Sequence record: LR756504.1
Direction: 5' to 3' (one strand)
DNA length: 64,000 nucleotides
Under the pieces are notes generated by a model that worked only from the letters and a program-made list of their open reading frames with translations, did no database searches and was not told the DNA's origin. Positions 5,841-63,105 of the stretch are shown here, in pieces (positions within the stretch are counted from its first letter, which is position 1; each line of letters starts with the position of its first letter). The translations under genes and the position numbers were made by a program.

Positions 5841-6038
5841 ATGGATAATTTATTTCCAATAGCACAAAGAATACAATCAAAAATTATAGGAATTGAATTA
5901 GTATCGGTTCAACCTTTAGCAACACCAAATTATTATCCTTACTGGAGGAATATAGTATACGACAGAAAATCTAAAATAGATAGAATATTTAAAAGTCCTG
6001 AATGGAGACAACATAAAATAGAAGAATTGTTAAAATAA
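5841..6038 (+). CDS. 65-aa protein with a gp23-like N-terminal segment and two R-x-x-K-I motifs
   Basis: LFPIAQRIQSKIIGIELVSVQPLATP resembles the VQPM..P segment of T4-like major capsid proteins. Confidence 0.55.
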   Translation: MDNLFPIAQRIQSKIIGIELVSVQPLATPNYYPYWRNIVYDRKSKIDRIFKSPEWRQHKIEELLK

Positions 6039-6135
6039 TTACAAAAAATGGTAAATTCATCTTTGAAAAATACAACATTTATTATTTTTAGCGTATAATA
6101 GTTACCTAAAATAGGTAAAAAATTAAACTTTAAAC

Positions 6136-6816
6136 ATGTTAGAAAATGAAAAGAATGAACCTACCGATGATTTAGAAAGCGAAGAAAATTTACCAGGTGA
6201 TGAATTAGATTCTGATATTTACACCGAATCAGATGGTACAGAAGAGCAAGATAATGCAGTGCTTGATGAAGAGCTGGCTGAATTATCAGAAAAAACTGAT
6301 GAAACTAAATTAGCTTCCGAAGAAGAGTCCAAACACAAAATAAAAGGAAAACATTCATTAACACACGATTCAATTTTTAAAGGTAAAAAAAAGAAGGATG
6401 AAAACGGTGATGATGATGAATTCTCCGCAGATTTTTTAGTTCCAAAACAAGATAATTTTGATTTCGATGTTTCATCTGGATACCATGAAGAAACAAAAGA
6501 TCCTGAAGAATACGTAAGACTTAAAAAGCTTAAAGAAGAAATTTATATTATTATTATTGAGAAAACTGATATAAATATTAAGAATTCGAGAAGAAAGCCA
6601 GGTAGATTAGATTTTAATAAATATTATGGTGTTATGGTAGAAAACTTAGATACTAAAACATATAGTTATGGTGAAATATTCATAGAATTGTCTTTTTATT
6701 TTAGTGATAATATTTTTAATATGTTCAAACTTTTAGATAAGAAATGGGGAGGAAAGATTATTAAAGAATTAGCAAAGAAAAGAAATATTAGAATAGATCA
6801 AATGGATTTTTTATAG
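6136..6816 (+). CDS. Hypothetical protein, very acidic N-terminal half
   Basis: 226-aa ORF, D/E-rich low-complexity N-terminus. Confidence 0.6.
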   Translation: MLENEKNEPTDDLESEENLPGDELDSDIYTESDGTEEQDNAVLDEELAELSEKTDETKLASEEESKHKIKGKHSLTHDSIFKGKKKKDENGDDDEFSADFLVPKQDNFDFDVSSGYHEETKDPEEYVRLKKLKEEIYIIIIEKTDINIKNSRRKPGRLDFNKYYGVMVENLDTKTYSYGEIFIELSFYFSDNIFNMFKLLDKKWGGKIIKELAKKRNIRIDQMDFL

Positions 6817-6840
6817 AAAAAAGGGCATAAGCCCTTTTTT
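6817..6840. terminator. Bidirectional intrinsic terminator
   Basis: AAAAAAGGGC-ATAA-GCCCTTTTTT between convergent ORFs. Confidence 0.85.
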
Positions 6841-6841
6841 C

Positions 6842-7174
6842 TTATATTAAATTTTTTATCTTTCTTCTCCTTATAAAATTTGTAAGAATACCTAGTTGAT
6901 ATTCAGTAATTAAAGGTTTACCATTACTGAAACACAATACAATTATATCTAATGATTTTTCACTTATATAACATAATACATCGAATGTGTAGAAATCTTT
7001 CCAACCTTTTATTACTACATTTTCATATTTATTGTAATATCCAACTTCCTCTATAGTTATAGTAATATCATCATAGATACCTTCTTTATTCAATTCAGTT
7101 TCCATTTCTAATTTATCTTTACCTTCAAGATAAATTAATTCATCAAATATTCCTCTAACAATTATATTTCTCAT
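6842..7174 (-). CDS. Hypothetical protein ending RRRKIKNLI
   Basis: 110-aa ORF. Confidence 0.55.
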   Translation of the reverse strand: MRNIIVRGIFDELIYLEGKDKLEMETELNKEGIYDDITITIEEVGYYNKYENVVIKGWKDFYTFDVLCYISEKSLDIIVLCFSNGKPLITEYQLGILTNFIRRRKIKNLI

Positions 7175-7244
7175 AATAAAACCCCCTTCAGTTTAATTTT
7201 TAAGTTAAACCAAAGAGGGAAAAAATTAAGTCTAAATTATTTAA

Positions 7245-8228
7245 TTAAAAATCTTCATCAAATTTTATTTGATTATCTTCTACACTTTTACCTGTAGAAG
7301 CTCTCTTATATTCTGAAACTCTTTTTTCAAAGAAATTATTTTTTCCAGATAATGATAACATTTCCATAAAATCAAATGGGTTTGTTACATTATATACTTT
7401 AGAATAACCTAATCTTTGTAACCAAAAATCTGCTATATATTCTATATATTGTGTCATTAAATTTGAATTCATACCTATCAGTGATACTGGTAACGATTCC
7501 GTAATAAATTCCTTTTCTATTTCTACAGCACTTATAATAATCTCTTTAACCTGTTCTTCTGATAGTTTATTTACTATATGATTTTTATACAATAAACATG
7601 CAAAATCACAATGTAATCCTTCATCTCTGGAAATTAAATCATTAGAAAATGATAATCCTGGCATCAATCCTCTTTTCTTTAACCAGAAAATCGAACAAAA
7701 TGCTCCTGAGAAAAATACGCCTTCTATGGCAGCGAATGCAATAAGTCTCTCTACGAAAGAGCCGTTATCAATCCAACGCATAGCCCACTCGGCTTTCTTT
7801 TTAATTGCTGGTATAGTGTCGTGAGCATTAAATAATCTATCTTTTTCAGCAGGATTTTTAATATAAGTATCAATTAAGAGTGAATATGTTTCGGAATGTA
7901 TATTTTCCATCATAATTTGAAAGCCATAATAGAATTTAGCTTCTGCGTATTGTACGGAATTAACCATATTACTACAGAGATTTTCATTTACGATGCCATC
8001 GGATGACGCAAAGAAAGCTAATATCATTGATATGAAATGTCTTTCATTATCAGTAAGACTCTCCCAATGTTTTATATCTTCCGATAAATCAATTTCTTCT
8101 GCCGTCCAAAACATTGATTCAGCAGTTTTATATGCTTGCCAAATATCATCATGTTTTATAGGGAAAATAACAAATCTATTTGGATCTTCAACAAGAATTG
8201 GTTCAATTTTTTCTAAATTTTTATTCAT
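7245..8228 (-). CDS. nrdB: Ribonucleotide reductase class Ia beta (R2) subunit
   Basis: [57 protein letters not shown]. Confidence 0.96.
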
Positions 8229-8362
8229 TCTATAATATACTTATTTTTTTATCTTAATTATTATATTATAAATGATATAATAGTTTAGTTAAATAAGAAT
8301 AAAAAAATCCACAGCTTTAGTAATTCTAAAATTGTGGATTTTTATTTAATTATAAAAATTGT

Positions 8363-9334
8363 TTATAACATAGTTACCTTGAATGATCTAGTTTTAGTAT
8401 AAACTATGTAATTTTTACCAATTACTGCTTTATATTTAAAAAAGTTTAATAGAATACCTTGATATACAAAATTTCCTTGAAAGTCATATATGTTTGCATC
8501 TTCTTGTAGATAATTAGTAGCAACATAAATAATATTAGTATATGTAGTAGCTCCATCATAGTCAACTTGTTTTATTCTATAATAAAGAACTGGTTCAACT
8601 ACATTGTGTTGTGTAAATGTATATTGATTATATTTGATATTTATACCACTAACTTCACCAATATCAGTAAAAACTTTTCCATCAATTGAATTTTCAATTA
8701 CATATTTATCATTATTTACTTCATCCGCAACAGTCCAATTAAGGATAACATCACCATTATTTTCTTTACCTGTAAATGAAATAAATTTAACTGGTAATGA
8801 ACCTACACACGAAACAACACTACCACTTGATGATGTTGGTGCTACTATAATAATGTTATCAATTAAAATATTATAATCTGAATAATTAGTAGCGAATGCA
8901 ATTTTAAATATACCTTGTCCAGTAGAAGTAGGTGTAAATGTAGTTGTGTACAAAGTCCATCCAATATTTGATTTACTTACTGTTGTAGGGTTACTATATG
9001 TACCACTAATATTAGTAGATACTGTTATACTATTGGTGCTTGGTATTGTTTCTATATCATAATAAAATGATATTGTATAGGGTTTACCAATTTCAAAGTA
9101 ATATTTTTGACTAATAATATATTCACCATCTTTAGCCTCAGCGTATTGATATCCTTCTTGTGCTCTCCCATCAGGAGTTTTTCTAACTTGAACATTAGAA
9201 CTACTTGGATCCCAACATGCATCATCTCTTAAATTTCCAGTATATACATTTTCAAAACCATCGACAAATTGTGTTGTTTGACCAATACATAGCGATGTAC
9301 ATAATAATACGAATAGAAATGTTATTTTTTTCAT
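8363..9334 (-). CDS. Secreted protein with CBM-like domain, LPV(K/E)-type Ig-like domain and degenerate T9SS C-terminal domain
   Basis: Signal peptide MKKITFLFVLLCTSLCIG; LPVKFISFTG...VILNWTVADEVNNDKYVIENSIDG...YYRIKQVDYDG; tail ANIYDFQGNFV. Confidence 0.75.
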   Translation of the reverse strand: MKKITFLFVLLCTSLCIGQTTQFVDGFENVYTGNLRDDACWDPSSSNVQVRKTPDGRAQEGYQYAEAKDGEYIISQKYYFEIGKPYTISFYYDIETIPSTNSITVSTNISGTYSNPTTVSKSNIGWTLYTTTFTPTSTGQGIFKIAFATNYSDYNILIDNIIIVAPTSSSGSVVSCVGSLPVKFISFTGKENNGDVILNWTVADEVNNDKYVIENSIDGKVFTDIGEVSGINIKYNQYTFTQHNVVEPVLYYRIKQVDYDGATTYTNIIYVATNYLQEDANIYDFQGNFVYQGILLNFFKYKAVIGKNYIVYTKTRSFKVTML

Positions 9335-9438
9335 TTTAGTGATTTTATTTTAATTCTTTGATTATAGAATAACTAAATAAAAAAGTTTTAAAAATAGAGA
9401 ATTATATTATTAAATAATGTTAAAAGTCTGTTTTTTAG

Positions 9439-10998
9439 CTAATTACACACAGGACAATCTCTTTCACCTTGTCCACCACATTCATAACATTCCCTGCTTC
9501 CTTCATTACAATAATTACAATATACTTTACCATCATTACAGTCGGAATTAGTACAATCAATTTTACCTATACCTTCACAGTTGTGGCATGTATTATGACC
9601 ATCTGTACAATATGCACAAGGTTCATATCCAATACCATCACAATCCTCACATTTTTCAATATTAAGCTTCCCAATACCTTTACATGTCTTACATTTAACT
9701 TCAATTTTCTTTTGCTCACCTATGCCATTAATAGTAAGTTGTGGTTCATCGATTAGTATAACACCTTTTCCTTTACAATCCACACATTCATCATAAGTTT
9801 CACCTACACCATTACATGTGTCACATTCAGAACCTCTGCCTGTTCCATCACATTTTTCACAGTCTATTTCACCAGTTCCACTACAATCAGAGCATTCAAT
9901 TTTTTCTGTTCCATCACAATAAGGACAATCTTGGTAACCATCACCATCACACTCATCACATTCATAAGAACCGTTATCACATTCACATGTAATAGTACCA
10001 TCACCCCCACATCTTTCACATTTATTATTAGGGCCGCCGTCAGTTTCGGACCATTTTTGAACATGACTCCTTGTGCTTGAATTGGTTAAATAATAACCAT
10101 CTGCGTCCTCACATAGAAATTTTATAGTATCCATGTATGGTTTTTCTACTTCTATCCAATCAATGCCTTTTGGTAAATTTATATCAAAATTTAGCTGTTT
10201 TACTCCATCTGAAGTATTAAATCTTTGACATGTGTATGATTGCTCAGTTTTATAAACCCATCCTTTTGTTTTAGCGTAATCAACCATCATATGAAGAGTT
10301 TCATCATCAATACTATAAACTCTATCCATAAATGTATATGTTTCTCCTTCGAAATCTTTAATATCTTTCCATATAATAGCTCTCGCCATTAATGTATTAC
10401 TTTTAATATCTATAAGAGCTAATAAATAAACATTAGGTGTTTTTGTATAAACTGTAAAATAATCTTCACACGATTCATATCTCATGCACGAATTATAAAG
10501 AGAAATGCTATCAGTTTTTCCATCTGGCCTAATGTAGTATTTATTTTCATTATACCATTTACTAATAACATCACCATGAAATAATTCAAATTTTGTTTTT
10601 TCTGAATCAGAAAACATTTTGTTGTGTGCTATCTTAAATTTATTAACAAAATCTTCTATTGCTTTATCATTAACGTCTACACCTTTTTTAAGAAGTAATG
10701 CTCTAAGTAAACGTCCAATTTTAGTTGATTGTCTTTTCTTTGATGTCCATTCAGTTTCACCTTCACTTGGTAATGTTTTACCAATATATGATACAAAATC
10801 ATTTTTATCACGTAAAATATCAAGATAGCTATCGCCTAAATCATCTTTTCCTTGATGTGCATCTAATAAAAATTTAGCTAATGGATCATCTATTTTTTCT
10901 AAAAGTTGTATTAAAGAATGGCTTAATACCAATTCTTTTTCAGAAATCATACCATTTAAAAAATTAAGGAATTCAACTAAAATTTTATAGTGATTCAT
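9439..10998 (-). CDS. SCMRY-domain protein with long C-terminal DnaJ-like CxxCxGxG zinc-finger array
   Basis: KIGRLL, SCMRY, RAIIW, FMDRVY; 14 CxxC plus 2 irregular Cys pairs. Start moved from 11130 to 10998 because a terminator lies in the longer N-terminus. Confidence 0.7.
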   Translation of the reverse strand: MNHYKILVEFLNFLNGMISEKELVLSHSLIQLLEKIDDPLAKFLLDAHQGKDDLGDSYLDILRDKNDFVSYIGKTLPSEGETEWTSKKRQSTKIGRLLRALLLKKGVDVNDKAIEDFVNKFKIAHNKMFSDSEKTKFELFHGDVISKWYNENKYYIRPDGKTDSISLYNSCMRYESCEDYFTVYTKTPNVYLLALIDIKSNTLMARAIIWKDIKDFEGETYTFMDRVYSIDDETLHMMVDYAKTKGWVYKTEQSYTCQRFNTSDGVKQLNFDINLPKGIDWIEVEKPYMDTIKFLCEDADGYYLTNSSTRSHVQKWSETDGGPNNKCERCGGDGTITCECDNGSYECDECDGDGYQDCPYCDGTEKIECSDCSGTGEIDCEKCDGTGRGSECDTCNGVGETYDECVDCKGKGVILIDEPQLTINGIGEQKKIEVKCKTCKGIGKLNIEKCEDCDGIGYEPCAYCTDGHNTCHNCEGIGKIDCTNSDCNDGKVYCNYCNEGSRECYECGGQGERDCPVCN

Positions 10999-11098: not shown

Positions 11099-12550
11099 TT
11101 ATCTTCTTCCGACACCTTTACAATATTCACAAGTCATAGTATCACCATCTTCTTTATGATGTCCTACGCCATCACATTCTTCGCAAAAACCACCATGATT
11201 GTATGACCAATTATCATCCCACTTTTGATTTTCATCATTAGTAAGTCTCGGAACTAATTTACCTGTTTCAACATCTTTAAAATATTTAAAAAATTTCAAT
11301 GTATCTAAATAAGGAAATCTAGTATTTTTCCAATCAGACCAATTAATATCATTTATAATAAATGCTTGTAATACAGATTGTTTTACGATAGCACCATTTG
11401 TAATAGGTGTATATGGTTTAGCGTTTTGTGTAGCTTTATACCACCAACCTCTTTTTTCAGCATATAGTTTAAACAATTCATCTAAAGGACCTTCAACACA
11501 ATAGATTCTATCCATAAAAGTAGCTATTTCACCATCAATTAGAATATCATTCCAAATTAATGCTCTACCCATTAATAATCCATTTTCTTTACTTATTAAA
11601 GTAAGAAGAGATATAAAAGGAGTATGTGTATAAACATGAAGATAATCTCCACATTTATCATAACGCATACAAGATTTATTTAGTGTGTCACCACCATCAA
11701 TGGGTTGGTGATATGAATTACCATTATACCATTTGATAATTTCTTCACCTTTTGTCATTTTCCAATCAGCAAATTCTAATTGCTCAGAATCGTCTACTTT
11801 TTGAATCGATCTGTATTTAGCAACGAAGGTATCTATCTCAGGCTGTGTGAATTGAACACCCCTTTCGTTGGCTACAGCAGTAACTAATCTACTAATTTTA
11901 GTTTTTTGTCTACTTGGATGTCTCCATACATCTCTTTCATTACCAATATCTTTTTTCTTTATTGGTAGATATGAAATAAATCCTTCTTCTGATGCAGTAT
12001 CAATATAACTAAAATCAATATTTAATACTTCTGAACTATTATGTAAATCTAAAAGAAATCTTGAAATAGTACCACCCATTCTTTTCAATTTATGTGATAG
12101 ACTTTTACCTAAAACAATTTCTTTTTGCTCCATTATAGAAAATAAGAATCCTCTTAATTGATCCATATCAGTTATAATAGAAGCTGGTGTTTTTTTAGAA
12201 GAAGTGGATTTTTTATCAGAAGAAGCAACTTCTGAATACCTATTCTTTATTACTTTTTTAGGAGTAAATGTAGCACCACCTATACCCCAATCATTTATAT
12301 TAATTGGTTGTTCTAAAAATTGTCGTTGCCTTTCAATATGTTCAGCAATCACTCTTTGTCTATCACCCTCATTATCACCCTCATTGTTATTTACATCAGG
12401 AATAGGAATACCCTCAGTAAAAAGCAACCAAACACCACCATTTTGATGTTCTTCTGCACCCACTTCCATATCTCTTCCTTTTTTTTGGGACACCCTTTTT
12501 TTATTTAAATAATCTTGGAAAGATCCTCTTTCGTTATCACCAGTTGGCAT
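11099..12550 (-). CDS. SCMRY-domain protein (paralog of 9439 ORF) with one terminal CxxCxGxG pair
   Basis: KISRLV, SCMRY, RALIW, FMDRIY, PYLDTLK; likely start MPTGDNERG at 12550 (track gives 12637). Confidence 0.7.
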   Translation of the reverse strand: MPTGDNERGSFQDYLNKKRVSQKKGRDMEVGAEEHQNGGVWLLFTEGIPIPDVNNNEGDNEGDRQRVIAEHIERQRQFLEQPININDWGIGGATFTPKKVIKNRYSEVASSDKKSTSSKKTPASIITDMDQLRGFLFSIMEQKEIVLGKSLSHKLKRMGGTISRFLLDLHNSSEVLNIDFSYIDTASEEGFISYLPIKKKDIGNERDVWRHPSRQKTKISRLVTAVANERGVQFTQPEIDTFVAKYRSIQKVDDSEQLEFADWKMTKGEEIIKWYNGNSYHQPIDGGDTLNKSCMRYDKCGDYLHVYTHTPFISLLTLISKENGLLMGRALIWNDILIDGEIATFMDRIYCVEGPLDELFKLYAEKRGWWYKATQNAKPYTPITNGAIVKQSVLQAFIINDINWSDWKNTRFPYLDTLKFFKYFKDVETGKLVPRLTNDENQKWDDNWSYNHGGFCEECDGVGHHKEDGDTMTCEYCKGVGRR

Positions 12551-12638
12551 ATTTTTCTTTTTAATTGCTTTTTTAATCAATTTAATGTAAAAAATAATAA
12601 TTTTCTTACATTTTTTTATAAATTTGAAAATTTTCATC

Positions 12639-15894: not shown

Positions 15895-16259
15895 AGAAAA
15901 AGGAATTTAAAGAAATTTTAGATTACCTTTTTGGTGAAATACATGGAATAGATACACATCGAATATGTTATGATGATTATAGCTATGATGAAAACATCAA
16001 TATAATTGTGAATTATCTTAGAGACGAAGAAAATACTTTAAGAGTTATATTTCCTGAATATGATGTATTAACAACAGAAAATTCCCAATTAAATAGTCTT
16101 CTATCTAAATTATCATCAGCTTCAATTTTATATAAAGAAATTGATAATACATATTTTTATCATGAAATGTTATTAAATAAAGAAATTATTGGTAAAATTA
16201 TTTTTCATAAAATTCTTAAAGAGAATAGAAAATATAAGATAAGTAATTTATTATTCTAA
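15891..16259 (+). CDS. Hypothetical protein ending RKYKISNLLF
   Basis: 122-aa ORF. Confidence 0.5.
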   Translation: MKKKEFKEILDYLFGEIHGIDTHRICYDDYSYDENINIIVNYLRDEENTLRVIFPEYDVLTTENSQLNSLLSKLSSASILYKEIDNTYFYHEMLLNKEIIGKIIFHKILKENRKYKISNLLF

Positions 16260-17830: not shown

Positions 17831-17865
17831 TGCTATTTTTTGATATATAGTCAAAAAGGTATAAA

Positions 17866-21264: not shown

Positions 21265-21654
21265 ATGGGAAAGATTTTACAAAATGCAGCATATTGTTTA
21301 AAATGTGATACTTATATCATTTCTACACATACACACGATTATATAACATGTTATTGTGGTAATATTGCTGTAGATGGTGGAAGTGAATATTTAAAGCGTT
21401 CTATTGATGAAAAAGAATCTTACGATGATTTCAGCTTAAATACCGAAAGTATCCCAGAAGAAATTAGAGCAAAATTGTTATGGGGCTCAAGAGGTAAGGA
21501 TGGTACAGAACCGTTAAAATTTTTACCAATTGGACAAAGAGAAACTGATCATTTAGAGGCTATTTTGAAAACACAAACTCAAATAAATGAGTTATATAAA
21601 ACTGCAATAAGAACAGAATTAAGAATAAGAAAAATATCGAACGCATCATTCTAA
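21265..21654 (+). CDS. Zn-binding phage protein
   Basis: CLKC...HTHDYITCYCGNIAVDGG; ends RIRKISNASF. Confidence 0.65.
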   Translation: MGKILQNAAYCLKCDTYIISTHTHDYITCYCGNIAVDGGSEYLKRSIDEKESYDDFSLNTESIPEEIRAKLLWGSRGKDGTEPLKFLPIGQRETDHLEAILKTQTQINELYKTAIRTELRIRKISNASF

Positions 21655-36299: not shown

Positions 36300-36470
36300 A
36301 TGCCAATAGGTGAAGATAACATAAAGCATTGTTTATGCTGTAAAAAGAAGGTAATTTCATACGAATTATTTTTTGTTTGTTCCAAATGTGTTAATAAAGG
36401 TCATACAGGATGGTTATCTTGTTCTGTGTGTAGCAAAGAAAAAAAGACTAAAGATACTGATATAAAATGA
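36300..36470 (+). CDS. 56-aa Cys-rich putative zinc-finger protein (not in track)
   Basis: HCLCC, CSKC, CSVC; ATGA overlap with next ORF. Confidence 0.5.
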   Translation: MPIGEDNIKHCLCCKKKVISYELFFVCSKCVNKGHTGWLSCSVCSKEKKTKDTDIK

Positions 36471-36919
36471 AAAATTTAGTTAAAATTGATTTAAGGACAA
36501 AAAGCCATTGGAATAAAACATCCCGTAATTATGAAACATTAACACCAGTTAATTTAAAAAAGTTTTTAGAAACTGTTGGTGAGGGAAATCAAGAAAGAAT
36601 TGATATTTTAAACTATTTTACAACTAAATTTGAATTATTTGCAATTGATTTAGAAACTTTAGAATTAACGGCTGGTTATACAGCTAAAGAAAGTTATTTA
36701 AATGAAGATTACTACAGAAGATTTGAAGAGAATAAATTTATTGATTTATCTGATAATATGTTGTACATGGAATATGAATATTTATGTGTGTGGAATGAAA
36801 ATAAGTTATGGGGAAAGTTAAAAAAAGAGCTTGGTGATGGATATACAATAAATTGGGAAACGTATCCATTGTGGGGATCTAGGAAAGCTAGAATTGTTGA
36901 TTTATTATTAGATGATTAA
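36467..36919 (+). CDS. Hypothetical protein ending RKARIVDLLLDD
   Basis: 150-aa ORF. Confidence 0.55.
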   Translation: MKNLVKIDLRTKSHWNKTSRNYETLTPVNLKKFLETVGEGNQERIDILNYFTTKFELFAIDLETLELTAGYTAKESYLNEDYYRRFEENKFIDLSDNMLYMEYEYLCVWNENKLWGKLKKELGDGYTINWETYPLWGSRKARIVDLLLDD

Positions 36920-37200: not shown

Positions 37201-37623
37201 ATGTTTGTAGAAATTGCACCAAAAGAAACTGGTAAAATTCAAAGATTAGTTAAAGATGCTATTAAATATCTTAATAGTCATCAGAATACCATTATATATT
37301 TAATATCTTATTCAGAAGCTCAATCCAATCAAATAAAAGATATAATTTTAGAAGAATATAACTGTGATAGTAGTAGAATTATAATTTCTAAATTTATGAC
37401 AAGAAAAAAAATATCTGGTTCAAGGGTTATAAAAAATTATGTGTATGGTTTCGATTTAATGAAAGAAATGGTAAACAATATGAAATATCTTTTTATAGAT
37501 GATGACGCTTATTATACAACATCTATTGGTACTTATTCTGATTTTACTAAACAATTAATAACACACTTTAAAAAATCATATAACAGAAAGAAGAAGATTG
37601 AAAATATAATTGAAGAAGAATAA
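37201..37623 (+). CDS. Hypothetical protein ending RKKKIENIIEEE
   Basis: 140-aa ORF. Confidence 0.55.
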   Translation: MFVEIAPKETGKIQRLVKDAIKYLNSHQNTIIYLISYSEAQSNQIKDIILEEYNCDSSRIIISKFMTRKKISGSRVIKNYVYGFDLMKEMVNNMKYLFIDDDAYYTTSIGTYSDFTKQLITHFKKSYNRKKKIENIIEEE

Positions 37624-37639
37624 AAAATTTTAAAAATAA

Positions 37640-39445
37640 ATGATTAAATATTACGAAGGAATAATATGCGTAGACAAGTTCAAGAAAGCATATTGTCAAG
37701 TGAATGAAAAAGAAACTGTTTATATAGCACCAAAATTTTTAAATAGAGCACTACATGGTGATAAAGTTTTATTGAAAATAAAAGATAACTATGGATTCGT
37801 ACAAAAAGTTATAGAAAGAAATAAAGTGCATATTACGGGACAAATACAAATAATGGATAATGGTGTCGCATTCGTTAAACCATGGATAAATAAATATCAA
37901 AAAGATTTTTTTATTAAAAATTCTGACATAAATGAGGCTAAAGATGGTGATGTTGTAGAAATAGAAGTTAGTGATTGGCCTAAGAAATTTAAATCTCCGA
38001 TAGCAAAAGTAAAAAAGGTATTATATCATACAACATCTGAACAAAACTTAATTTATAAGCTTAATTTACCAACTAAATTTCCCGATGGAGTTTTAGAAGA
38101 AATTCAAAACATTGAAAATAATATTAAAGAAGAAATTCAAAACAGAATAGATTTGAGACATCTCAGAGTATTTTCTATTGATCCAAAAGGTTCAAAAGAT
38201 TTAGATGATGCGCTATCACTTGAAGTAACTGATCATGGTTATAGGGTTGGTATCCACATAGCCGATGTAACAGCTTGGATGAAACCAGGTACATTACTTG
38301 ATCAAGAGGCATTCAAACGAGGATGTTCCGTATATTTACCAAATACAGTAGTACCTATGATACCACATTCATTATGTGAAAACTTATGTAGTTTATTACC
38401 ACAGCAAGATAGACTAGCTATATCAGTTATGATTAATTTTGATAGAGAATGGAATTTATCTGATTATTACATATTTAGAAGTGTTATACACAATAGACAT
38501 CAATTTACTTACGAAGAAGCCGAAATACATAGAACAAGCTCAGAATCAGAATATTATAATGAATTAAATATGTTGTATGTAATAGGACAAAAAATAAGAA
38601 ATCAATATTTTCCAAATGAGTTTGAATTAAAAATGCCTTATTTAAAATGGGAATTTGATGAAAATAAAGAACCTGTAAAAATTAAAATAAAAGATAGAAT
38701 AGCTACTAATGATTTAATACAATCGTGGATGTTAATGGCTAATTTTTTAGTTACTAAGAAAATAGAGAGTTTGGGTTCATTTCCTTGGGTATATAGAGTC
38801 CATCCAGAAATTACTGATGAAAAAATAAATAATATAAAAGTAGATATTAAGCATTTAAATTTAGAATGGGATGATTCCATAAATATATATGCTAATATAA
38901 AGAAATTATTATCATCAGAACGTTCAGATATTGTGTCAGATATTCTAATAAAGAAATTTAGACCTGCTTATTATAGCCCTGAAAGAAAAGGACATTTTGC
39001 TTTGGGTTCGCATGAATATGCCCACTTTACCTCACCTATAAGAAGGTATCCTGATGTAATAATACATAGAATTTTATTAAATGCTTTAGATGGTAAACAA
39101 ATTTTTTGCGGAAATTTGGAAGATGAATGTAATCATTTAAGTACATGTGAAAAAATAGCAGATGATGCTGAAAGAACCGCACACCAATTGAATAGTTTAA
39201 AATTTATTAAAGATGTCAAATATCCAATGGATGGCACTATAACATCTTTTTCTAAGAGAGGTATAACAATAAGAACCGAATTAATGGTTGATGGCTTCAT
39301 TCATGCTAAAGAACTACCAGCTTATTGGTCGGATGATGAAAGACGATGGGTAAATGAGCAAAATTGGAAAATTGGTGATATAGTAAGAGTAAAAATAAAG
39401 AATTTAGATTGGAATAGAAGAGAAATTGTTCTAAATTTTGTATAA
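37640..39445 (+). CDS. rnr: Ribonuclease R/II family exoribonuclease
   Basis: ALHGDKV cold-shock domains, SIDPKGSKDLDDALS, HIADV, HFTSPIRRYPD, C-terminal S1. Confidence 0.92.
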   Translation: MIKYYEGIICVDKFKKAYCQVNEKETVYIAPKFLNRALHGDKVLLKIKDNYGFVQKVIERNKVHITGQIQIMDNGVAFVKPWINKYQKDFFIKNSDINEAKDGDVVEIEVSDWPKKFKSPIAKVKKVLYHTTSEQNLIYKLNLPTKFPDGVLEEIQNIENNIKEEIQNRIDLRHLRVFSIDPKGSKDLDDALSLEVTDHGYRVGIHIADVTAWMKPGTLLDQEAFKRGCSVYLPNTVVPMIPHSLCENLCSLLPQQDRLAISVMINFDREWNLSDYYIFRSVIHNRHQFTYEEAEIHRTSSESEYYNELNMLYVIGQKIRNQYFPNEFELKMPYLKWEFDENKEPVKIKIKDRIATNDLIQSWMLMANFLVTKKIESLGSFPWVYRVHPEITDEKINNIKVDIKHLNLEWDDSINIYANIKKLLSSERSDIVSDILIKKFRPAYYSPERKGHFALGSHEYAHFTSPIRRYPDVIIHRILLNALDGKQIFCGNLEDECNHLSTCEKIADDAERTAHQLNSLKFIKDVKYPMDGTITSFSKRGITIRTELMVDGFIHAKELPAYWSDDERRWVNEQNWKIGDIVRVKIKNLDWNRREIVLNFV

Positions 39446-41164: not shown

Positions 41165-41704
41165 ATGAAAGTCTTAAAAGACATTACCAACTTCTTTATT
41201 TTGAAAGATTATCAAGATAAAATTCGAATGACCGCAAAAGATTTCGGATACATACTATTATTTAAAATATGTATAGCTTACATTTCTGTAATAATAGGAA
41301 ATTTGCTATTAACATATGTCTTTAAATTGAAAGTAGATAGTATACATTCTAAAATTGCTATTGGTGAATTATATTACTTAGGAGTTATTTTAGCTCCTAT
41401 ATTAGAAGAACTTTTTTTTAGATTACCACTACTTTTAATAAGTATGGTACTTAAAAATTTTAAAATGTTAGTGATGATTTCATATGTTTGTATATCTGTG
41501 TTTTTTGGATTAATTCATATTACTAATTATAACAACTTTTCAAACTATTCAGCTTTAGAAATGTTAGTTATAACATTTCCTCAAATATTAGGAGGTTTTG
41601 TATTAGGTTGGGTGTGTTTAAAATATAAATTTGGATTATTATGGAGCATTCTTTTACACGCATCATTTAATTTTATAGGAGTTTCACTTTCAGCATTATT
41701 ATAA
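41165..41704 (+). CDS. CPBP (CAAX/Abi) intramembrane metalloprotease
   Basis: PILEELFFR, FFGLIH, LHASFN; multiple TM segments. Confidence 0.85.
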   Translation: MKVLKDITNFFILKDYQDKIRMTAKDFGYILLFKICIAYISVIIGNLLLTYVFKLKVDSIHSKIAIGELYYLGVILAPILEELFFRLPLLLISMVLKNFKMLVMISYVCISVFFGLIHITNYNNFSNYSALEMLVITFPQILGGFVLGWVCLKYKFGLLWSILLHASFNFIGVSLSALL

Positions 41705-42635: not shown

Positions 42636-42791
42636 ATGGAAATTTTAAAACTAATATTAGAAAATGCAATAGCGACAATTGCAATAATCTTTTTTACTTC
42701 GTTAGGAATTTCGGAGATTGTTTCATCATTTGTATCTGAAAAATGTAAATGTAAAAAGACTAATAGAAATGAAAAAATCTTAAAATCTTAA
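42636..42791 (+). CDS. 51-aa TM peptide ending RNEKILKS (not in track)
   Basis: MEILKLILENAIATIAIIFFTSLGISEIV... Confidence 0.4.
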   Translation: MEILKLILENAIATIAIIFFTSLGISEIVSSFVSEKCKCKKTNRNEKILKS

Positions 42792-43814
42792 TTGCCTATG
42801 AGCAAATTAAAAACCATCGGACAGTTTATCATAAGCGAACAATTACATTTTCCAGATGCTTCTGGTAAATTATCTAGCTTGTTAAATGATATTACTATAG
42901 CTGCTAAAATCGTAAATAGTCAAGTAAATAAAGCAGGACTAATAAATATTTTAGGCGATGATGGTACTACGAATGTACATGGTGAGTCGGTAAAAAAATT
43001 AGATATTTTTGCAAATGAACAGTTTATTAAAGCATTATCATCAGGTGGTCAATGTTGTGCTATAGCAAGTGAAGAAAATGAAGATATTATAAATTTAGAT
43101 GATAGTGGTAAATATGTTGTTTGTATAGATCCACTAGATGGTAGTGATGGTGTGACTTACAATTCTATAATAGGAACAATTTTTTCAATTTATAAAAGAT
43201 TAAGTGATGTTGGAACTAAATCTAATATTAAAGATTGTCTACAAAAGGGTATAAATCAAGTAGCATCTGGATTCTTTTTATTTGGACCATCCACTATTTT
43301 CATTTTGACTACTGGAAATGGTGTTAATGGATTTACTTTATATCCTTCTGTGGGAGAATTCTTTTTATCACACCCAAATATAAATATATCTAAAAATGGG
43401 AAAATTTATAGCATAAATGAGGGGAATTATTTCAAATTTCCAATAGGTGTTAAAAAATATATCAAATATTGTCAGAAAGAAGATAAAAGTACTGATAGAC
43501 CATATACTACTCGTTATATGGGTAGTATGGTAGGTGATATATTTAGAACATTGATAAAAGGTGGAATATTTATGTATCCTACTACATCAAGTTATCCCAA
43601 TGGTAAATTGAGATTATTGTACGAATGTAATCCAATGAGTTTTATCATAGAACAAGCTGGTGGGATATCAATAAATGAATATGGTAATAGAATAATGGAT
43701 ATTCAACCATCAGAAATTCATCAAAGAACTTCTATATATTTAGGTTCTGAAAACATGATAGAAAAAATGAAAGAGTTTATATTAAAGAATAGAAAGATGA
43801 TAAGTAAACATTAA
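42792..43814 (+). CDS. fbp: Fructose-1,6-bisphosphatase class 1
   Basis: KKLD, ASEE, DPLDGS, YSINEG, RYMGSMVGD, GKLRLLYECNPM. Confidence 0.92.
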   Translation: MPMSKLKTIGQFIISEQLHFPDASGKLSSLLNDITIAAKIVNSQVNKAGLINILGDDGTTNVHGESVKKLDIFANEQFIKALSSGGQCCAIASEENEDIINLDDSGKYVVCIDPLDGSDGVTYNSIIGTIFSIYKRLSDVGTKSNIKDCLQKGINQVASGFFLFGPSTIFILTTGNGVNGFTLYPSVGEFFLSHPNINISKNGKIYSINEGNYFKFPIGVKKYIKYCQKEDKSTDRPYTTRYMGSMVGDIFRTLIKGGIFMYPTTSSYPNGKLRLLYECNPMSFIIEQAGGISINEYGNRIMDIQPSEIHQRTSIYLGSENMIEKMKEFILKNRKMISKH

Positions 43815-46578: not shown

Positions 46579-46974
46579 ATGGTAATAACATTAATAATAT
46601 TGAGTGTAACAGGTATGTCCCTTCTTTATATGTTTGGTTATAAGATAGGTAAAGAAAAAGGAACTAATGAACAAATTTCACTTTTAAATAAAGAAGTCGA
46701 ATCTGAACAACGAATAGGTGTATTAACCACAAATCTTTTATGTGGTGAAGAAACTATCGTAATTAAAGCAGAAGTTAAAGAGATTGCTAAAGGTGATACA
46801 AAATGTAAGGTAGAATATACAACATTTCATATTACACCAACTAAACACAATAATCAAAACCGATGGGATGCGGTAAAAGAGTATCTTGGTCCTTGGGTAG
46901 ATTCAAAAAATATAGAGTGGTATGTTGAATATGATACAAGAAAGCGGAGAATTCAAAGATTTTTAAATAAATAA
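46579..46974 (+). CDS. N-terminally anchored membrane protein ending RKRRIQRFLNK
   Basis: 131-aa ORF. Confidence 0.55.
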   Translation: MVITLIILSVTGMSLLYMFGYKIGKEKGTNEQISLLNKEVESEQRIGVLTTNLLCGEETIVIKAEVKEIAKGDTKCKVEYTTFHITPTKHNNQNRWDAVKEYLGPWVDSKNIEWYVEYDTRKRRIQRFLNK

Positions 46975-55764: not shown

Positions 55765-56609
55765 GATTTTTAAAAAACTTATTCAAAAGAAATCCAAATA
55801 GATTTAAGAAAACTAAATGGGATGATTTAATTGCTGATAATCCATTCTCTAAAAAGAATAAAAATAGTGCAAATTCTTATTCAAATAGCATACCTAAATC
55901 AGTGCTTCAAATTATAGGAATAAACGTAGCAGTATTTTTACTATTATGGATTTGTGAAATTGCTTTACCTATGACATGGTATCAAATGATTGTTAAAATG
56001 CTTGCTGTTCCTACAGATATAGAAATATTATATAAACCTTGGACTGTAATAACATCAGCATTTACGCATTTATCTTTTGGTCATATATTAGGAAATATGT
56101 TAGCTATATTTTTCATAGCACCTTATTTCAAAATGGCATTCATAGATAAACAAATATGGAATTTATATTTATTGGGACATTTTGTAGGGATATTCTTTTC
56201 AATAGGAATTAATATTCTTATATTTGATGATCACGGGATGGCTTTAGGTGCATCGTGTGGTGTGTCAGCATTAGTAGCTGGTGTATGTTTTAAATTTCCA
56301 CAAATGCCAGTGAATATATTTTTTATTAACACAACACTTAAATGGTTAATTGCTATTTATGTAATACAATCAATATTCATGTTATTCTCACCTAATATGG
56401 TTGGTGGTATTGGACATTTATTTGGAATGTTATTAGGTGTATTGTATGTTCATTTATTAACAAAAAATATAGAAATAGGAAAAATATTTGATTCAATTAC
56501 TAAATTAAAAATTAAAAAAACAGGTAAAGGTATTAAATACGTTTCAATGTATAGTGAAAAATCAGAAAATTCAATTAAAAATATAATTAACAAAAACTTC
56601 AAAAAATAA
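55761..56609 (+). CDS. Rhomboid family intramembrane serine protease
   Basis: PWTVITSAFTH, HILGNM, GASCG, GHLFG; multiple TM. Confidence 0.88.
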   Translation: MRFLKNLFKRNPNRFKKTKWDDLIADNPFSKKNKNSANSYSNSIPKSVLQIIGINVAVFLLLWICEIALPMTWYQMIVKMLAVPTDIEILYKPWTVITSAFTHLSFGHILGNMLAIFFIAPYFKMAFIDKQIWNLYLLGHFVGIFFSIGINILIFDDHGMALGASCGVSALVAGVCFKFPQMPVNIFFINTTLKWLIAIYVIQSIFMLFSPNMVGGIGHLFGMLLGVLYVHLLTKNIEIGKIFDSITKLKIKKTGKGIKYVSMYSEKSENSIKNIINKNFKK

Positions 56610-57927: not shown

Positions 57928-57990
57928 AAGTTCTTTATGAAGTCTTGCATTTTCTAACTTTAAATATTCTAACTCATAATTTTTATCCAT
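57763..57990 (-). CDS. Hypothetical 75-aa protein
   Basis: Coiled-coil N-terminus; contains KESSAGINPNEL. Confidence 0.55.
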   Translation of the reverse strand: MDKNYELEYLKLENARLHKELKESSAGINPNELIELLGVASDMRHLLERCRGHQIPVDLAKSIDGVLSRARDFDE

Positions 57991-58008
57991 GTGTGTTTAA
58001 TAAATTTT

Positions 58009-58873: not shown

Positions 58874-58874
58874 A

Positions 58875-59174: not shown

Positions 59175-59232
59175 TTTAAGGTTATTTATTTTAGTTATAT
59201 ATATTTTTATAAATTTCCTTAAAAATCAATTA

Positions 59233-59646
59233 TTAGTTCATATAAGGAAAGAAGAATTTACTCTCGATACTAGCATTTTCATCAGAATCAGATCCGTGTA
59301 CAGCATTAGCTTCCATACTTTTTGCAAATAGATTTCTAATAGTACCTGGTTCAGCATTAGCTGGATTTGTTGCACCAACTAATTTACGATAATCAGCGAC
59401 AGCATTTTCTTTTTCGAGTACAAATACTACAATATTTCCACTTGACATATAATTAGTTAAATCATTGTAAAATGGTCTTTCTTTGTGAACTTCGTAGAAT
59501 TTACCAGCATCTTCAATAGTAAGATTTGTCATTTTCAAATCTACTATTTTAAAACCTTCATTCTCTATCATTTTTAGTATTGCATCAACGTGTCCATCTT
59601 TTACTGCATCTGGCTTAATCATTGAAAATGTTCTATTTGTCTCCAT
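59233..59646 (-). CDS. ndk: Nucleoside diphosphate kinase
   Basis: [37 protein letters not shown]. Confidence 0.96.
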
Positions 59647-59703
59647 ATTTTTTATTTTTGTATCGTCTATAAGCTATAATACAGCTTATTATTATAAGTG
59701 TTA

Positions 59704-61218
59704 TCATATATCAAATTTTATTCCTTGAGATAATGGTAATTCTTTACTGTAATTTATAGTATTTGTTTGTCTTCTCATATATACTCTCCAAGCATCCGAA
59801 CCAGATTCAAATCCACCACCAGTTTCCTTATGTCCACCAAATGCGCCACCAATTTCTGCACCAGATGTTCCAATATTAATATTTGCTATACCACAATCAG
59901 AACCCCAAGCAGATAGAAACATTTCAGATTCTCTAATATCTGTTGTAAATAATGATGATGATAATCCTTGTTTTACATCATTTTGAATTTCAATAGCATT
60001 AGTAATATCACCTTTATATTTCATTAAATATAGTATTGGCACAAATGTTTCTTTTTGTACAATATCATAACGATTTTCTGCTTCAACTATTGCTGGATAA
60101 ACATAATTCTCATAAAGATGTCTTCCACCAACAATTAATCTACCACCTTCGTGTTCAACTTTAAATATAGCATCTTTAAAAGAATTGACAGCATCCATAT
60201 CAATTAATGGTCCTACTAATGTATCTTCTTTTAGAGGATTACCAATTCTTATATTTTTATATACTTCTACTAACTTCGATTTAACTTCTGAATACACATC
60301 TTCGTGTACAATCAACCTTCTTGTTGTTGTGCATCTTTGCCCAGCAGTGCCAACTGCGCTAAAAGCCACCGCTCTAATTGCTAAATCTAAATCAGCTTTA
60401 TTAGAGATAATAATAGCATTATTACCACCCAATTCTAAAATTGTTTTACCAAATCTATCAGCAACAGCTTTACTAACAATTCCACCCATTCTCGTAGAAC
60501 CTGTAGCAGACACTAACGCAATTCTTCTATCATTAGCAATTAAAGAACCTATTGTAGCATCACCATTAACTAATGAAAATATACCTTCTGGTAATTTATT
60601 TTTTACCAATACTTGTTTTATAATATTTTGACAAGCAATGGCGGTTAAAGGAGTTTTTTCACTTGGCTTCCATACACATACATTACCACAAACGGCAGCT
60701 ATCATAGCATTCCAAGCCCATACAGCAACAGGGAAATTAAATGCTGAAATAATACCAACTATACCAAGTGGATGCCACTGTTCATATATTCTATGCTCAG
60801 GACGTTCGGAATGCATAGTCAATCCATATAATTGTCTAGATAAACCGACAGCAAAATCACATAAGTCAATCATCTCTTGTACTTCACCTAAACCCTCTTG
60901 AAGAATTTTGCCCATTTCTAAAGAAACTAACATACCCAAAGCTTCCTTATTCTTCCTTAATTCATCACCAATTTGGCGAACAATTTCACCTCTCTTAGGT
61001 GCTGGTATAGTTCTCCATATTTTGAATGCTTTCTCAGCTTCTTGTATAACTCTTTCGTAATGACTTTCATTTGCCATACATACAGATGCTATAACTTCAT
61101 TATTAATGGGAGATTTAATAACTTTTTCGTTATCCGAATACTCATGTATTAAACCTGTACTTGAACATGGATTTACTTTAGCTATTTCTAATTGATTTAA
61201 AACTTCTTTTATTACCAT
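59704..61218 (-). CDS. Aldehyde dehydrogenase family 7 (alpha-aminoadipic semialdehyde dehydrogenase-like)
   Basis: EGLGEVQEMID, SAFNFPVAVW, ATGSTRMG, LELGGNNA, GQRCTT, FGGHKETG. Confidence 0.92.
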   Translation of the reverse strand: MVIKEVLNQLEIAKVNPCSSTGLIHEYSDNEKVIKSPINNEVIASVCMANESHYERVIQEAEKAFKIWRTIPAPKRGEIVRQIGDELRKNKEALGMLVSLEMGKILQEGLGEVQEMIDLCDFAVGLSRQLYGLTMHSERPEHRIYEQWHPLGIVGIISAFNFPVAVWAWNAMIAAVCGNVCVWKPSEKTPLTAIACQNIIKQVLVKNKLPEGIFSLVNGDATIGSLIANDRRIALVSATGSTRMGGIVSKAVADRFGKTILELGGNNAIIISNKADLDLAIRAVAFSAVGTAGQRCTTTRRLIVHEDVYSEVKSKLVEVYKNIRIGNPLKEDTLVGPLIDMDAVNSFKDAIFKVEHEGGRLIVGGRHLYENYVYPAIVEAENRYDIVQKETFVPILYLMKYKGDITNAIEIQNDVKQGLSSSLFTTDIRESEMFLSAWGSDCGIANINIGTSGAEIGGAFGGHKETGGGFESGSDAWRVYMRRQTNTINYSKELPLSQGIKFDI

Positions 61219-61328
61219 ATACCGTAAGATTTTTAATTATAGATAAATTGATTATTAAAGTTTGATATTTTTAAAACTTTTATCATTTTTTTCCTAATAA
61301 TTAAAAACCAATATAAATCACTATTGTT

Positions 61329-61715
61329 ATGAAACTGTACATATTATTAATACTATTGTTAACATCTATTACATGCTTTGGTCAAAAATATTGGGATCAA
61401 AATCATTTTTATCACACAAAAGGTGGTGAAATGAAGCATTGTGATTCCGTTTCAGTTGAATTAATTCCACTAAAAAATTGTAACTGTGAGCACGAACAAA
61501 ACGCCAATAATAAAGATCCATTTGCACCAATTCAACCGTTTATAGAACATACTTGTGTTGAAAAACGTTACACTAAACATTGTAAAAAAGCTGTATGGGT
61601 TAGTAAATCTGGTGAAAAAGATGTTCATATTTGGAATGGTAAATATTGGATTTTAATGAGTTCCAAAGGAATTTATTGGTATTATTACTGGGAGAAATAT
61701 ACAGAAATTCTTTAA
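61329..61715 (+). CDS. Secreted Cys/Trp-rich hypothetical protein
   Basis: Signal peptide MKLYILLILLLTSITCFG. Confidence 0.55.
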   Translation: MKLYILLILLLTSITCFGQKYWDQNHFYHTKGGEMKHCDSVSVELIPLKNCNCEHEQNANNKDPFAPIQPFIEHTCVEKRYTKHCKKAVWVSKSGEKDVHIWNGKYWILMSSKGIYWYYYWEKYTEIL

Positions 61716-61766
61716 AGTTTGCAAAATTGAGCATTTTTTTGTATATTTATACAAAATTAATATTTA

Positions 61767-62213
61767 ATGAAAAAGAGAATCGAAATATTGTATGATACAT
61801 TAAAAAATCCTTATATAGGTGTTAAATATTATCCGTATGAGCTTGGTGCATATTTAACATTATTTAAAAAATTTCTTAATGATGATAAAATACACGATTT
61901 TTATTCTTTAAATAGAATAAATAGAGATGGTGAAAATTTTCATATAACTTTATTTATTGTTCCTGAATATAATTTTAAGAAAGAAGTATTAGATGATTAT
62001 ATAAATATTGAAGTTGATATTAATATAATTGGAATAGGGCGTGTCGAAGAAGATGATAATGAAGCATTCTATTTAATTGTTGATTCTTTTGATTTAAATA
62101 ATATTAGAATTGAAAATGATTTCGAATATAAAGATTTACATATTACTTTAGGATTCAAAGAAAAAGATATATTCATACCAAAAGGATTGGATACAGTGGT
62201 ACTTAAATTATGA
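61767..62213 (+). CDS. 2H phosphoesterase (Swiss-army-knife type)
   Basis: Two HxT motifs: FHITLF and LHITLGF. Confidence 0.75.
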   Translation: MKKRIEILYDTLKNPYIGVKYYPYELGAYLTLFKKFLNDDKIHDFYSLNRINRDGENFHITLFIVPEYNFKKEVLDDYINIEVDINIIGIGRVEEDDNEAFYLIVDSFDLNNIRIENDFEYKDLHITLGFKEKDIFIPKGLDTVVLKL

Positions 62214-62572
62214 GAAAACTATATGATAGATTAAAAATACTAAAGGATAATCAAGAATTTATTTCCGATTTTGTTATTTATTTAAATGAACAAGAAAATT
62301 GGAAATCATCACTCGAAAACTATGAAATAAATGATAAAATCATAGTTAAAGAGTGTAATTTTACTATAGTAAATGAAAATCATAGAGAATCTCTAACAGC
62401 TATCATTGAAGTATTTAAAATAGGAGATAATAAAAAATCCAATTATACTTATTGTTTATTTAATATAGATGTAAATGGTGAATTAAGTTCTAATATAGTT
62501 GAAAACTTAGAAATATTTTTCATTGATATGACATCAATCATTAGAAAGCATAGAATAACATACTTCATATGA
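62210..62572 (+). CDS. Hypothetical protein ending RKHRITYFI
   Basis: 120-aa ORF. Confidence 0.5.
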   Translation: MRKLYDRLKILKDNQEFISDFVIYLNEQENWKSSLENYEINDKIIVKECNFTIVNENHRESLTAIIEVFKIGDNKKSNYTYCLFNIDVNGELSSNIVENLEIFFIDMTSIIRKHRITYFI

Positions 62573-63105
62573 TGAGATTAAATAATAAAAACTTTAGAGA
62601 GATTTTTTTCAAAATTGATGCTGATAATATTAATGATTTAAAAAATGAAATATTGAATATATTTAAAATAAATAATATATCATCATCTTACTATTTTAGA
62701 ACATGGTTTAATTTACCTATTAATAAACATAGAAATATTAGCGGATATGTAAAAAATCCATTTGAAGCACCATCTATTAATCAATTAACAGGTATTGTTC
62801 AATTTTTGCATTTTTCTAAAATTGATGGATTGCCTCTATTTTTTGCATATCAAACACCCGTAGATTTTTCGGGAATACAACCTAATATGGATGTGAATAA
62901 TAATACTTTAGGGCTAACAGAAAATATTATAATTGGTTTTAGTTCAAAATTAGAGTCTAATAAAATTATAGACAGTAATTATCAAATAGGAAATTTAAAC
63001 AACGTTAAAGTATTACTTGCTAGTTTACTTGAATCTGATTATCCTAATGATACTTTTAATCTAAAAAATAGAAGTGATAGAATAGAAAATTTATTAGAAG
63101 ATTGA
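62569..63105 (+). CDS. Hypothetical protein ending RSDRIENLLED
   Basis: 178-aa ORF. Confidence 0.5.
   Translation: MMRLNNKNFREIFFKIDADNINDLKNEILNIFKINNISSSYYFRTWFNLPINKHRNISGYVKNPFEAPSINQLTGIVQFLHFSKIDGLPLFFAYQTPVDFSGIQPNMDVNNNTLGLTENIIIGFSSKLESNKIIDSNYQIGNLNNVKVLLASLLESDYPNDTFNLKNRSDRIENLLED

Follow-up and report, generated by a model that had tools for sequence, protein, structure and literature searches.

Why should a set of small, otherwise unrelated phage proteins end in nearly the same nine residues? The question arises from a 64,000-nucleotide stretch of the record LR756504.1 (bases 410061-474060, hereafter the window; 26% G+C, zero N), in which an earlier note, made from the sequence alone, had reported about 11 open reading frames carrying a common R-x-x-(K/R)-I-x-x-(L/I/F)-(L/I) peptide, here called the tag, at or near the stop codon. 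Of the curated circular phage genomes published by Al-Shayeb et al. (2020; PMC7162821), LR756504.1 is one of the four largest, a 636 kb member of the "Mahaphage" clade whose replication is predicted to occur in Bacteroidetes (PMC7162821). Here we describe the tag across this genome and its relatives and weigh what it may do. On balance we favor, with somewhat better than even confidence, the view that it is a common address or docking signal read by one co-evolving receptor protein.

The tag at protein C-termini

We scored the tag both as a strict motif, R..[KR]I..[LIF][LI], and as a core motif, R-x-x-x-I-x-x-[LIFMV] ending no more than nine residues from the C-terminus. The gene set of the window comprised 92 ATG-started genes, picked greedily, while genome-wide statistics refer to the complete LR756504.1 record (928 genes, 192,194 residues). 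Within the window, the strict motif occurred nine times in the last 15 residues of the 92 genes, each time no more than six residues before the stop codon, and 0 times at 17,865 internal positions. Shuffling controls led us to expect 0.016 terminal matches when whole proteins were shuffled and 0.04 when only the last 20 residues were. Genome-wide, terminal matches to the strict motif outnumbered internal ones by 44 to 5. The core motif was terminal in 156 of 928 proteins, for which the internal rate predicts 10.7 (P about 1e-120), and 144 of its carriers were found among the 526 proteins sized 55-160 residues. From case to case the tag finishes 0-6 residues before the stop. As a guard against post-hoc choice of a motif, all gapped three-residue patterns in the last 14 residues were enumerated and compared with internal windows, independently of the motif proposed earlier. 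The top-ranked C-terminal pattern was R...I..L, present in 108 of 907 proteins versus 30 of 12,343 internal windows (p = 5e-140). The original regular expression proved too narrow, as 36 further proteins end in R-K-x-I-I-x-x-L-L and about 50 in R-K-x-R-I-x-N-L-N/Y.

The earlier note had named enrichment over internal positions and shuffled sequences as the check on its claim, and the counts above bear the claim out. All 12 C-termini that it listed are present in the sequence as quoted. Its estimate of about 11 carriers was rightly seen for the window and understated the whole, since the genome-wide set amounts to about 150 proteins, or about 17% of the proteome. Among its weaker items, RNMIINDILN (52230) is a genuine member of the frequent variant with Ile at position 4, to which the 36 further proteins also belong, while RIRKISNASF (21265) and RNEKILKS (42636) are doubtful.

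The proteins that carry the tag have little else in common. After removal of the tag, the 156 proteins fell into 113 BLAST clusters, 98 of them singletons, and none of the hhalign probabilities among the seven largest tagged families reached 45%, most being under 2%. When 150 tagged proteins were scanned against Pfam and PHROG, a family was assigned to almost none of them and no common family emerged, and a Foldseek search of the PDB with a model of one tagged family (A2) returned nothing below E = 4. The bodies range from 54 to about 230 residues and include soluble proteins as well as 13 with an N-terminal transmembrane helix. A DnaJ match within the tagged set was rejected as a chance match to the loose motif. 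A given body can also occur both with and without the tag: a Nudix-like carrier has a paralogue without it, and the body of the protein encoded at window 62569-63105 recurs, as a homologous internal segment, in an untagged protein of 563 aa encoded at another place in the genome. In a family of seven paralogues (alignment A4), a conserved body is joined through an indel-rich linker to a conserved F..I..DIR.EKI..LL. The tag is thus portable across more than 100 unrelated bodies. The claims that the bodies share nothing else and that the recognizable enzymes lack the tag had both been made before; the first holds at the level of profiles and the second is broadly right.

These observations bear on the idea of a common structural element, in which the tag would be the final helix of a single, highly divergent superfamily or else a short zipper that joins small proteins to each other. 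The heptad-like spacing of its hydrophobic residues would suit such an element, and many carriers are indeed paralogues in tandem arrays. However, bodies that are unrelated by profile, differ in length and occur with or without a transmembrane helix are not what one superfamily would give, nor are a variable, indel-rich linker between body and tag and a body that is found both tagged and untagged. We therefore regard a structural element as improbable.

Selection on the peptide and its predicted helical form

Retention of the tag in relatives could be followed for three of the carriers in the window. The orthologue of the 62569-63105 protein, 47% identical, ends in NRSDRIDKILLTL. A search of 1.8 billion representative proteins returned four homologues of the 36467-36919 protein (29-63% identity), in which GSRKA[RK][IL]..[LFI][LM] is the best-conserved block. 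Of the orthologues of the 37201-37623 protein, one with 66% identity carries RKKRIEDII and one with 50% carries RISKLKSFL; at 22% the tag is degenerate. Purifying selection thus acts on the tag, which is retained in orthologues at 29-66% identity.

Conservation at the ends of genes could in principle reflect a nucleic-acid element lying over them, such as a promoter, a recombination cassette, a translation-initiation region or an operator of the gene that follows. Overlap with the following start codon (ATGA) is common among tagged genes, their coding sequence is rich in A, and TGA stops are found in 45 of 156 tagged genes (29%) versus 86 of 772 untagged genes (11%). This TGA excess exists because many tagged genes overlap the following start codon as ...TTATGA, and overlaps of this kind are a sign of tight translational coupling within arrays. 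The codons themselves, however, argue against a nucleic-acid element. At conserved tag positions they follow the synonymous usage of the genome (for Arg, AGA 33, AGG 8 and CGN 3; for Leu8, TTA 23, CTA 8, TTG 3 and CTT 3), positions 3, 6 and 7 show many different codons, and there is no nucleotide conservation beyond what the peptide needs. Exact DNA patterns find just 1-12 of the roughly 150 tags, and the distance from tag to stop varies from 0 to 6 codons. Moreover, 29 of the 156 tagged genes end facing a convergent gene and others lie upstream of terminator-like hairpins, so that the motif is independent of a downstream start codon. When tags on unrelated proteins were compared in pairs, identical residues were encoded by identical codons at frequencies of 0.47-0.73, where codon usage predicts 0.42-0.77; in this the tag is unlike DNA cassettes of the T4 promoter-stem-loop type. 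Selection acts on the peptide and not on the DNA, and the tags are not recent DNA copies. The same had been argued previously from differing codons, and the match between codon choice and background usage agrees with it. A nucleic-acid explanation is largely refuted, and we give it almost no credence.

Tagged genes occur in co-directional arrays of small genes. They are concentrated in a stretch of about 135 kb (580-636 kb and 0-80 kb, continuous in the circular genome), in which about 35-40% of the genes are tagged. A Bacteroidetes -7 promoter motif precedes 12 of 156 tagged and 139 of 772 untagged genes, with a random rate of 0.07; these counts are uninformative.

The residue preferences within the tag are specific. 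Position 1 is effectively invariant, with Arg in 44 terminal cases and Lys in 0, and position 5 was Ile in 44 cases versus Leu, Val, Met or Phe in 2. When the positional profile was conditioned solely on R, I and a hydrophobic position 8, information also resided in positions 2 (Lys in 59%), 4 (Lys, Arg or Ile in 90%) and 9 (hydrophobic in 76%). Information content was highest at positions 1, 2, 4, 5, 8 and 9, positions 6 and 7 were almost never hydrophobic, and the residues after Leu8 varied (L, I, N or Y, then E, D, K or N). An example of the tag peptide is FDNISNDIRIEKIENLL. At 100 degrees per residue, positions 1, 5, 8 and 9 would lie on one face of a helix, with 2 and 4 flanking it. AlphaFold2 modeled the tag of the 36467-36919 protein as a separate terminal helix (residues 139-149) after a 10-residue coil and predicted that of the 37201-37623 protein to be helical as well, both with low confidence. 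The amphipathic helix proposed in the earlier note is consistent with the helical periodicity of conservation and with these two models.

An amphipathic helix with Lys and Arg flanking its hydrophobic face, placed at the C-terminus, also brings to mind the membrane-targeting helices of MinD and FtsA. Lipid binding, however, tolerates exchanges that the tag does not, as Arg1 is never Lys and Ile5 is rarely Leu, Val or Phe. The tag offers just three or four hydrophobic residues, acidic residues end many tags, and proteins that already have a transmembrane anchor carry it too. We consider membrane targeting highly improbable.

Positions 4 and 9 co-vary. Proteins with Arg4 have Asn or Tyr at position 9 in 22 cases and a hydrophobic residue in 12; those with Lys4 or Ile4 have a hydrophobic residue there in 77 cases, Asn in 6 and Tyr in none. 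Examples in the window are the proteins encoded at 36467-36919 (Arg4, hydrophobic position 9) and 52230-52520 (Ile4). Since each subtype covers many unrelated clusters, there may be perhaps two or three classes of signal.

Distribution, candidate functions and receptors

Beyond LR756504.1, related metagenomic contigs are rich in tags; in one of them (L032), about 13-15 of 33 genes are tagged. In the related phage LR756502.1, whose reductase is 56% identical to the ribonucleotide reductase encoded in the window, the tag was found in all three 50-kb samples, with 28 carriers versus 3.2 expected. The consensus differs between the two phages, being R-K-x-[K/R/I]-I-x-x-L-[L/I] in LR756504.1 and R-[D/E]-x-K-I-x-x-I-L in LR756502.1, where the charge of position 2 is reversed (K to D/E) and position 8 is Ile. 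The 150 kb sampled from LR756502.1 contained no tagged orthologue of a tagged LR756504.1 protein. In the sampled regions of other large phages the tag was absent: there were 2 matches versus 0.6 expected in the Tenacibaculum jumbo phage pT24 (28% G+C), 1 versus 1.2 in Lak-A2 and Lak-B2, and 0 versus 0.8 in LR756511. These phages served as controls for composition and phylogeny, pT24 and the Lak phages being just as AT-rich as LR756504.1. IMG/VR was scanned with two queries, the RNase R-like protein and tagged family A2, and both recovered the same phage and no other. The tag is thus confined to a single clade of huge phages, with a consensus that varies from one related phage to another.

We read the tag as a docking peptide because the conservation of its helix face is residue-specific, the linker is variable, the bodies are unrelated and the consensus shifts between lineages; the same features argue against lipid binding and against a self-packing helix. 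It would act as a portable short linear motif forming about two and a half turns of an amphipathic helix, with Arg1, Ile5, Leu8 and residue 9 on the face, residues 2 and 4 (Lys/Arg/Ile) on its flanks, and positions 3, 6 and 7 polar and free to vary. A variable linker would tie this helix to the end of more than 100 unrelated, fast-turnover small proteins. One stereospecific receptor protein, encoded by the phage or at any rate co-evolving with its lineage, would read the helix near the free end and thereby recruit, sort or process the whole accessory set, whose members would probably be host-takeover or early proteins. Helical docking, a single receptor and the early or accessory role of the carriers are all elements that we infer.

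Several points weigh against this reading. The tag decays in a distant orthologue (L031). In a more distant metagenomic homologue (P0015) of the family at record 624676-629909, it is present as DIRVEQIEDFL and is then followed by 12 extra residues, which indicates that closeness to the chain end is not absolute. The two AlphaFold2 models were built on shallow alignments and have mean pLDDT values of 60 and 56, with about 50 or less for the tag, so that the case for a helix draws mainly on the periodicity of the sequence. No receptor was identified among the candidates examined, and docking is deduced from sequence. One hub with about 150 competing ligands would be unusual unless it were abundant or handled its clients serially. 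The early or host-takeover status of the carriers derives solely from gene size and arrangement. Finally, docking alone leaves the strict near-end position unexplained.

It is this position that makes a degron or adaptor tag attractive, for the motif must sit close to the chain end, 0-6 residues from it, as expected of a signal that initiates threading. The tag would then deliver its carriers, or targets bound by them, to an AAA+ protease, either for timed clearance of early proteins or for the destruction of host factors. When we searched the phage proteome with E. coli proteins, ClpX, three ClpP paralogues, DnaK and DnaJ were found to be encoded, and queries with E. coli DnaN and Lon gave no match. 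Pfam added a ClpA/C-like double AAA+ protein and a gp44/RFC-like clamp loader. The phage therefore has a proteolysis set of its own, and a tagged gene (291481-291825) overlaps the stop of one of its clpP genes. ClpX recognizes a class of C-terminal degrons, the MuA type, that is basic plus hydrophobic, as is the tag. Degrons of the ssrA and MuA types and the ClpX-binding tail of the adaptor SspB resemble the tag further as portable peptides, placed at the very C-terminus, through which a single machine receives unrelated proteins. Compared with E. coli ClpX, however, the phage enzyme is missing the N-terminal zinc domain, to which adaptor tails bind. Its pore loop is GYTG, and its counterpart of the E. 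coli RKH loop, KKQ, is still basic and thus not complementary to a basic tag. Neither the residues that follow Leu8 nor the spacing to the carboxylate is constant, so the tag has no defined last residues of the kind that ClpX degrons have, and helically periodic conservation suggests docking and not an extended chain in a pore. Nor is ClpX co-distributed with the tag in the sampled phages: LR756502.1 is tagged and yet gave no ClpX match at E <= 1e-40 (63 matching records), while Lak-B2 and LR756511 have ClpX and no tags in the sampled regions around it. ARAGORN detected no transfer-messenger RNA with a tag resembling the motif. These results weaken the phage ClpX as the receptor; a host ClpX or the ClpA-like protein is a possible one. 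Overall, we judge a degron to be unlikely. The genes of the quality-control set (ClpX, three ClpP, ClpA/C-like, DnaK and DnaJ) have the record coordinates 37587-38744, 370660-371439, 291825-292514, 146134-146688, 534497-536443, 388805-390682 and 575764-576741.

Among the closest functional analogues of the tag are the cargo peptides of bacterial microcompartments and encapsulins, which are also short terminal peptides (amphipathic helices in microcompartments) on unrelated cargo, separated from it by a poorly conserved linker and read by one receptor surface. The tag could accordingly be a loading signal that binds the procapsid interior, a scaffold or an intracellular phage compartment. It has the terminal amphipathic helix, the variable linker and the unrelated cargo of such signals, a lattice-type receptor could take about 150 different clients, and among huge phages the tag is peculiar to a single clade. 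However, its sequence differs (an invariant Arg, then I-x-x-L-L), its scale is far larger, and its carriers are tiny proteins without known function where the cargo of microcompartments and encapsulins is enzymes. The 13 membrane-anchored carriers fit capsid packaging poorly, the carriers lie in early-gene-like arrays and not in structural modules, and no BMC-H/P or encapsulin shell gene was seen among the approximately 45 large proteins of the 928 that were scanned with Pfam. Loading of a virion or compartment is, in our estimation, rather improbable.

A further candidate hub is a sliding clamp, which is able to hold very many partners. The PCNA-interacting protein (PIP) boxes of archaeal and eukaryotic PCNA partners and the clamp-binding tails of T4 gp43, gp33 and gp55 share with the tag a C-terminal h-x-x-h-h (h, hydrophobic) with basic flanks. 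Read as K-x-x-I-x-x-L-L, the tag resembles non-canonical PIP boxes in its spacing; it has this spacing at the extreme C-terminus and a basic residue or Gln three positions upstream of Ile5 (Lys in 59% and Gln in 5% of tags), and the cluster of the gp44/RFC-like clamp loader is flanked on both sides by tagged genes. On the other hand, the Gln and the aromatic pair of the PIP box are missing, and the key residue, the invariant Arg1, has no PIP-box counterpart. The putative PolB, the FEN-like 5′-3′ exonuclease and the clamp loader, which would be expected to bind a clamp, all end untagged. No clamp gene was identified, the E. coli DnaN query having found nothing, and the sole large protein ending in Q-x-x-I-x-x-L-L (QYKIDDLL) is a WG-repeat protein and not a polymerase. 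A clamp-binding motif is very improbable, and clamp, membrane and nucleic-acid readings are all disfavored, the first two having been weakened by the evidence above.

Further parallels exist in other systems. The ankyrin/PRANC (F-box-like) adaptors of poxviruses likewise form a big, fast-evolving set with variable target-binding bodies and one conserved C-terminal element that plugs into a common machine. They are, however, eukaryotic and ubiquitin-based, and their element is a domain of about 40-50 residues on related ankyrin bodies, in contrast to nine residues on unrelated ones. The T4 capsid targeting sequence, the peroxisomal targeting signal PTS1 and the classical nuclear localization signal (NLS) are, like the tag, short transferable addresses on unrelated proteins. 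The T4 signal is N-terminal and is cleaved off by the prohead protease, unlike the C-terminal tag, and PTS1 and the NLS have other sequences, receptors and cellular settings. By the features tested, the tag is not a member of the microcompartment/encapsulin, ClpX-degron, clamp-tail or viral-adaptor systems. It belongs among the portable terminal targeting and docking peptides, where it is unusual in its scale, its restriction to a clade and its differing versions. Full-text searches of the literature found no description of the motif, in agreement with the earlier note, which knew of none.

A bolder proposal would be that the clade runs its own protein-sorting system, in which a dedicated phage-encoded receptor directs more than 100 unrelated accessory proteins to one place or machine. 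We offer this tentatively and think it less probable than not; conceivable destinations are a compartment, a scaffold or a processing complex. Such a system would be the counterpart in bacterial viruses of NLS/importin or PTS1/Pex5, and a phage with such a receptor would organize much of its proteome by a linear sorting or recruitment code. We know of no such code documented for bacterial viruses. Most genes of huge phages are small and without recognizable function, and one tag on about 150 of them provides a handle on the whole class: with a single peptide one could fish for a common partner, predict which of these proteins act jointly and ask where in the infected cell they go. The version differences between related phages can be used as a natural covariation experiment in the search for the receptor. 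As a simple marker, the tag also allows this phage clade to be recognized in metagenomes and, if transferable, it might serve as a compact tag for synthetic biology in Bacteroidetes.

Carriers and neighboring genes in the window

The window holds ten convincing carriers and one borderline one (Table 1). Two further C-termini lie outside the core motif. That of the 21265 protein is doubtful because it lacks hydrophobic residues at positions 8 and 9, and that of the 42636 protein because its spacing does not fit.

Table 1. Tagged and doubtful proteins encoded in the window (window coordinates; a hyphen precedes residues that follow the tag, and "stop" marks a tag that ends the protein)
Protein	Coordinates	Strand	C-terminal end	Tag codons	Remarks
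65 aa	5841-6038	+	RQHKIEELL-K	6006-6032	
110 aa	6842-7174	-	RRRKIKNLI stop	6845-6871	gene end convergent with 6136-6816; terminator-like hairpin follows
122 aa	15891-16259	+	RKYKISNLL-F	16227-16253	
86 aa	18159-18419	-	RNRKIKGLL stop	18162-18188	gene end convergent
150 aa	36467-36919	+	GSRKARIVDLL-LDD	36881-36907	
140 aa	37201-37623	+	RKKKIENII-EEE	37585-37611	
131 aa	46579-46974	+	RKRRIQRFL-NK	46939-46965	N-terminal transmembrane helix
96 aa	52230-52520	+	RNMIINDIL-N	52488-52514	Ile4 subtype
120 aa	62210-62572	+	RKHRITYFI stop	62543-62569	stop overlaps start of next gene
178 aa	62569-63105	+	NRSDRIENLL-ED	63070-63096	
226 aa	6136-6816	+	RNIRIDQMD-FL		borderline; position 8 is Met; motif absent from homologue in LR756502.1
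129 aa, Zn-ribbon-like	21265-21654	+	RIRKISNASF		doubtful
51 aa, membrane protein	42636-42791	+	RNEKILKS		doubtful

A second terminal bias was seen at the other end of the proteins. In the first 15 residues, K.F..F-type patterns occurred in 34 of 907 proteins versus 29 of 12,282 internal windows, and among small proteins this set never co-occurred with the C-terminal tag (0 of 17; p = 0.005). These N-termini are probably signal peptides or membrane anchors and may correspond to the "CTS-bearing" set that the earlier note had described as almost mutually exclusive with the tagged one.

Several neighboring genes are also of interest. Two intramembrane proteases are encoded at window 41165-41704 and 55761-56609, a Rce1-like CPBP protease (E = 6e-11) and a rhomboid (E = 9e-20), and the CPBP gene is syntenic in the related contig L029. 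Genes related to metabolism or translation lie at window 42798-43814, 59704-61218, 37640-39445 and 50141-50968 and at record 65765-67891; they encode fructose-1,6-bisphosphatase, aldehyde dehydrogenase, an RNase R/II-like exoribonuclease, an RNase T-like exonuclease and EF-G. Two adjacent genes (window 9439-10998 and 11099-12637) encode proteins of about 515 residues with cysteine-rich C-terminal parts. One of them matches the DnaJ central CXXCXGXG domain and ends in ...ECGGQGERDCPVCN; the other matches no Pfam family and ends in ...CEYCKGVGRR. In a relative (L017), a gene for ribosomal protein S21 is annotated beside the orthologous region, and the 62-residue gene at window 63750-63938 is likely its counterpart. 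ARAGORN called an odd tRNA-like gene on the minus strand at 51028-51104, with a two-base anticodon loop call ("at"). The 60-residue open reading frame at 50954-51136 overlaps it, and the match of that frame to the tag pattern is therefore probably spurious. Three more "tRNA-???" calls of this kind are found elsewhere in LR756504.1.

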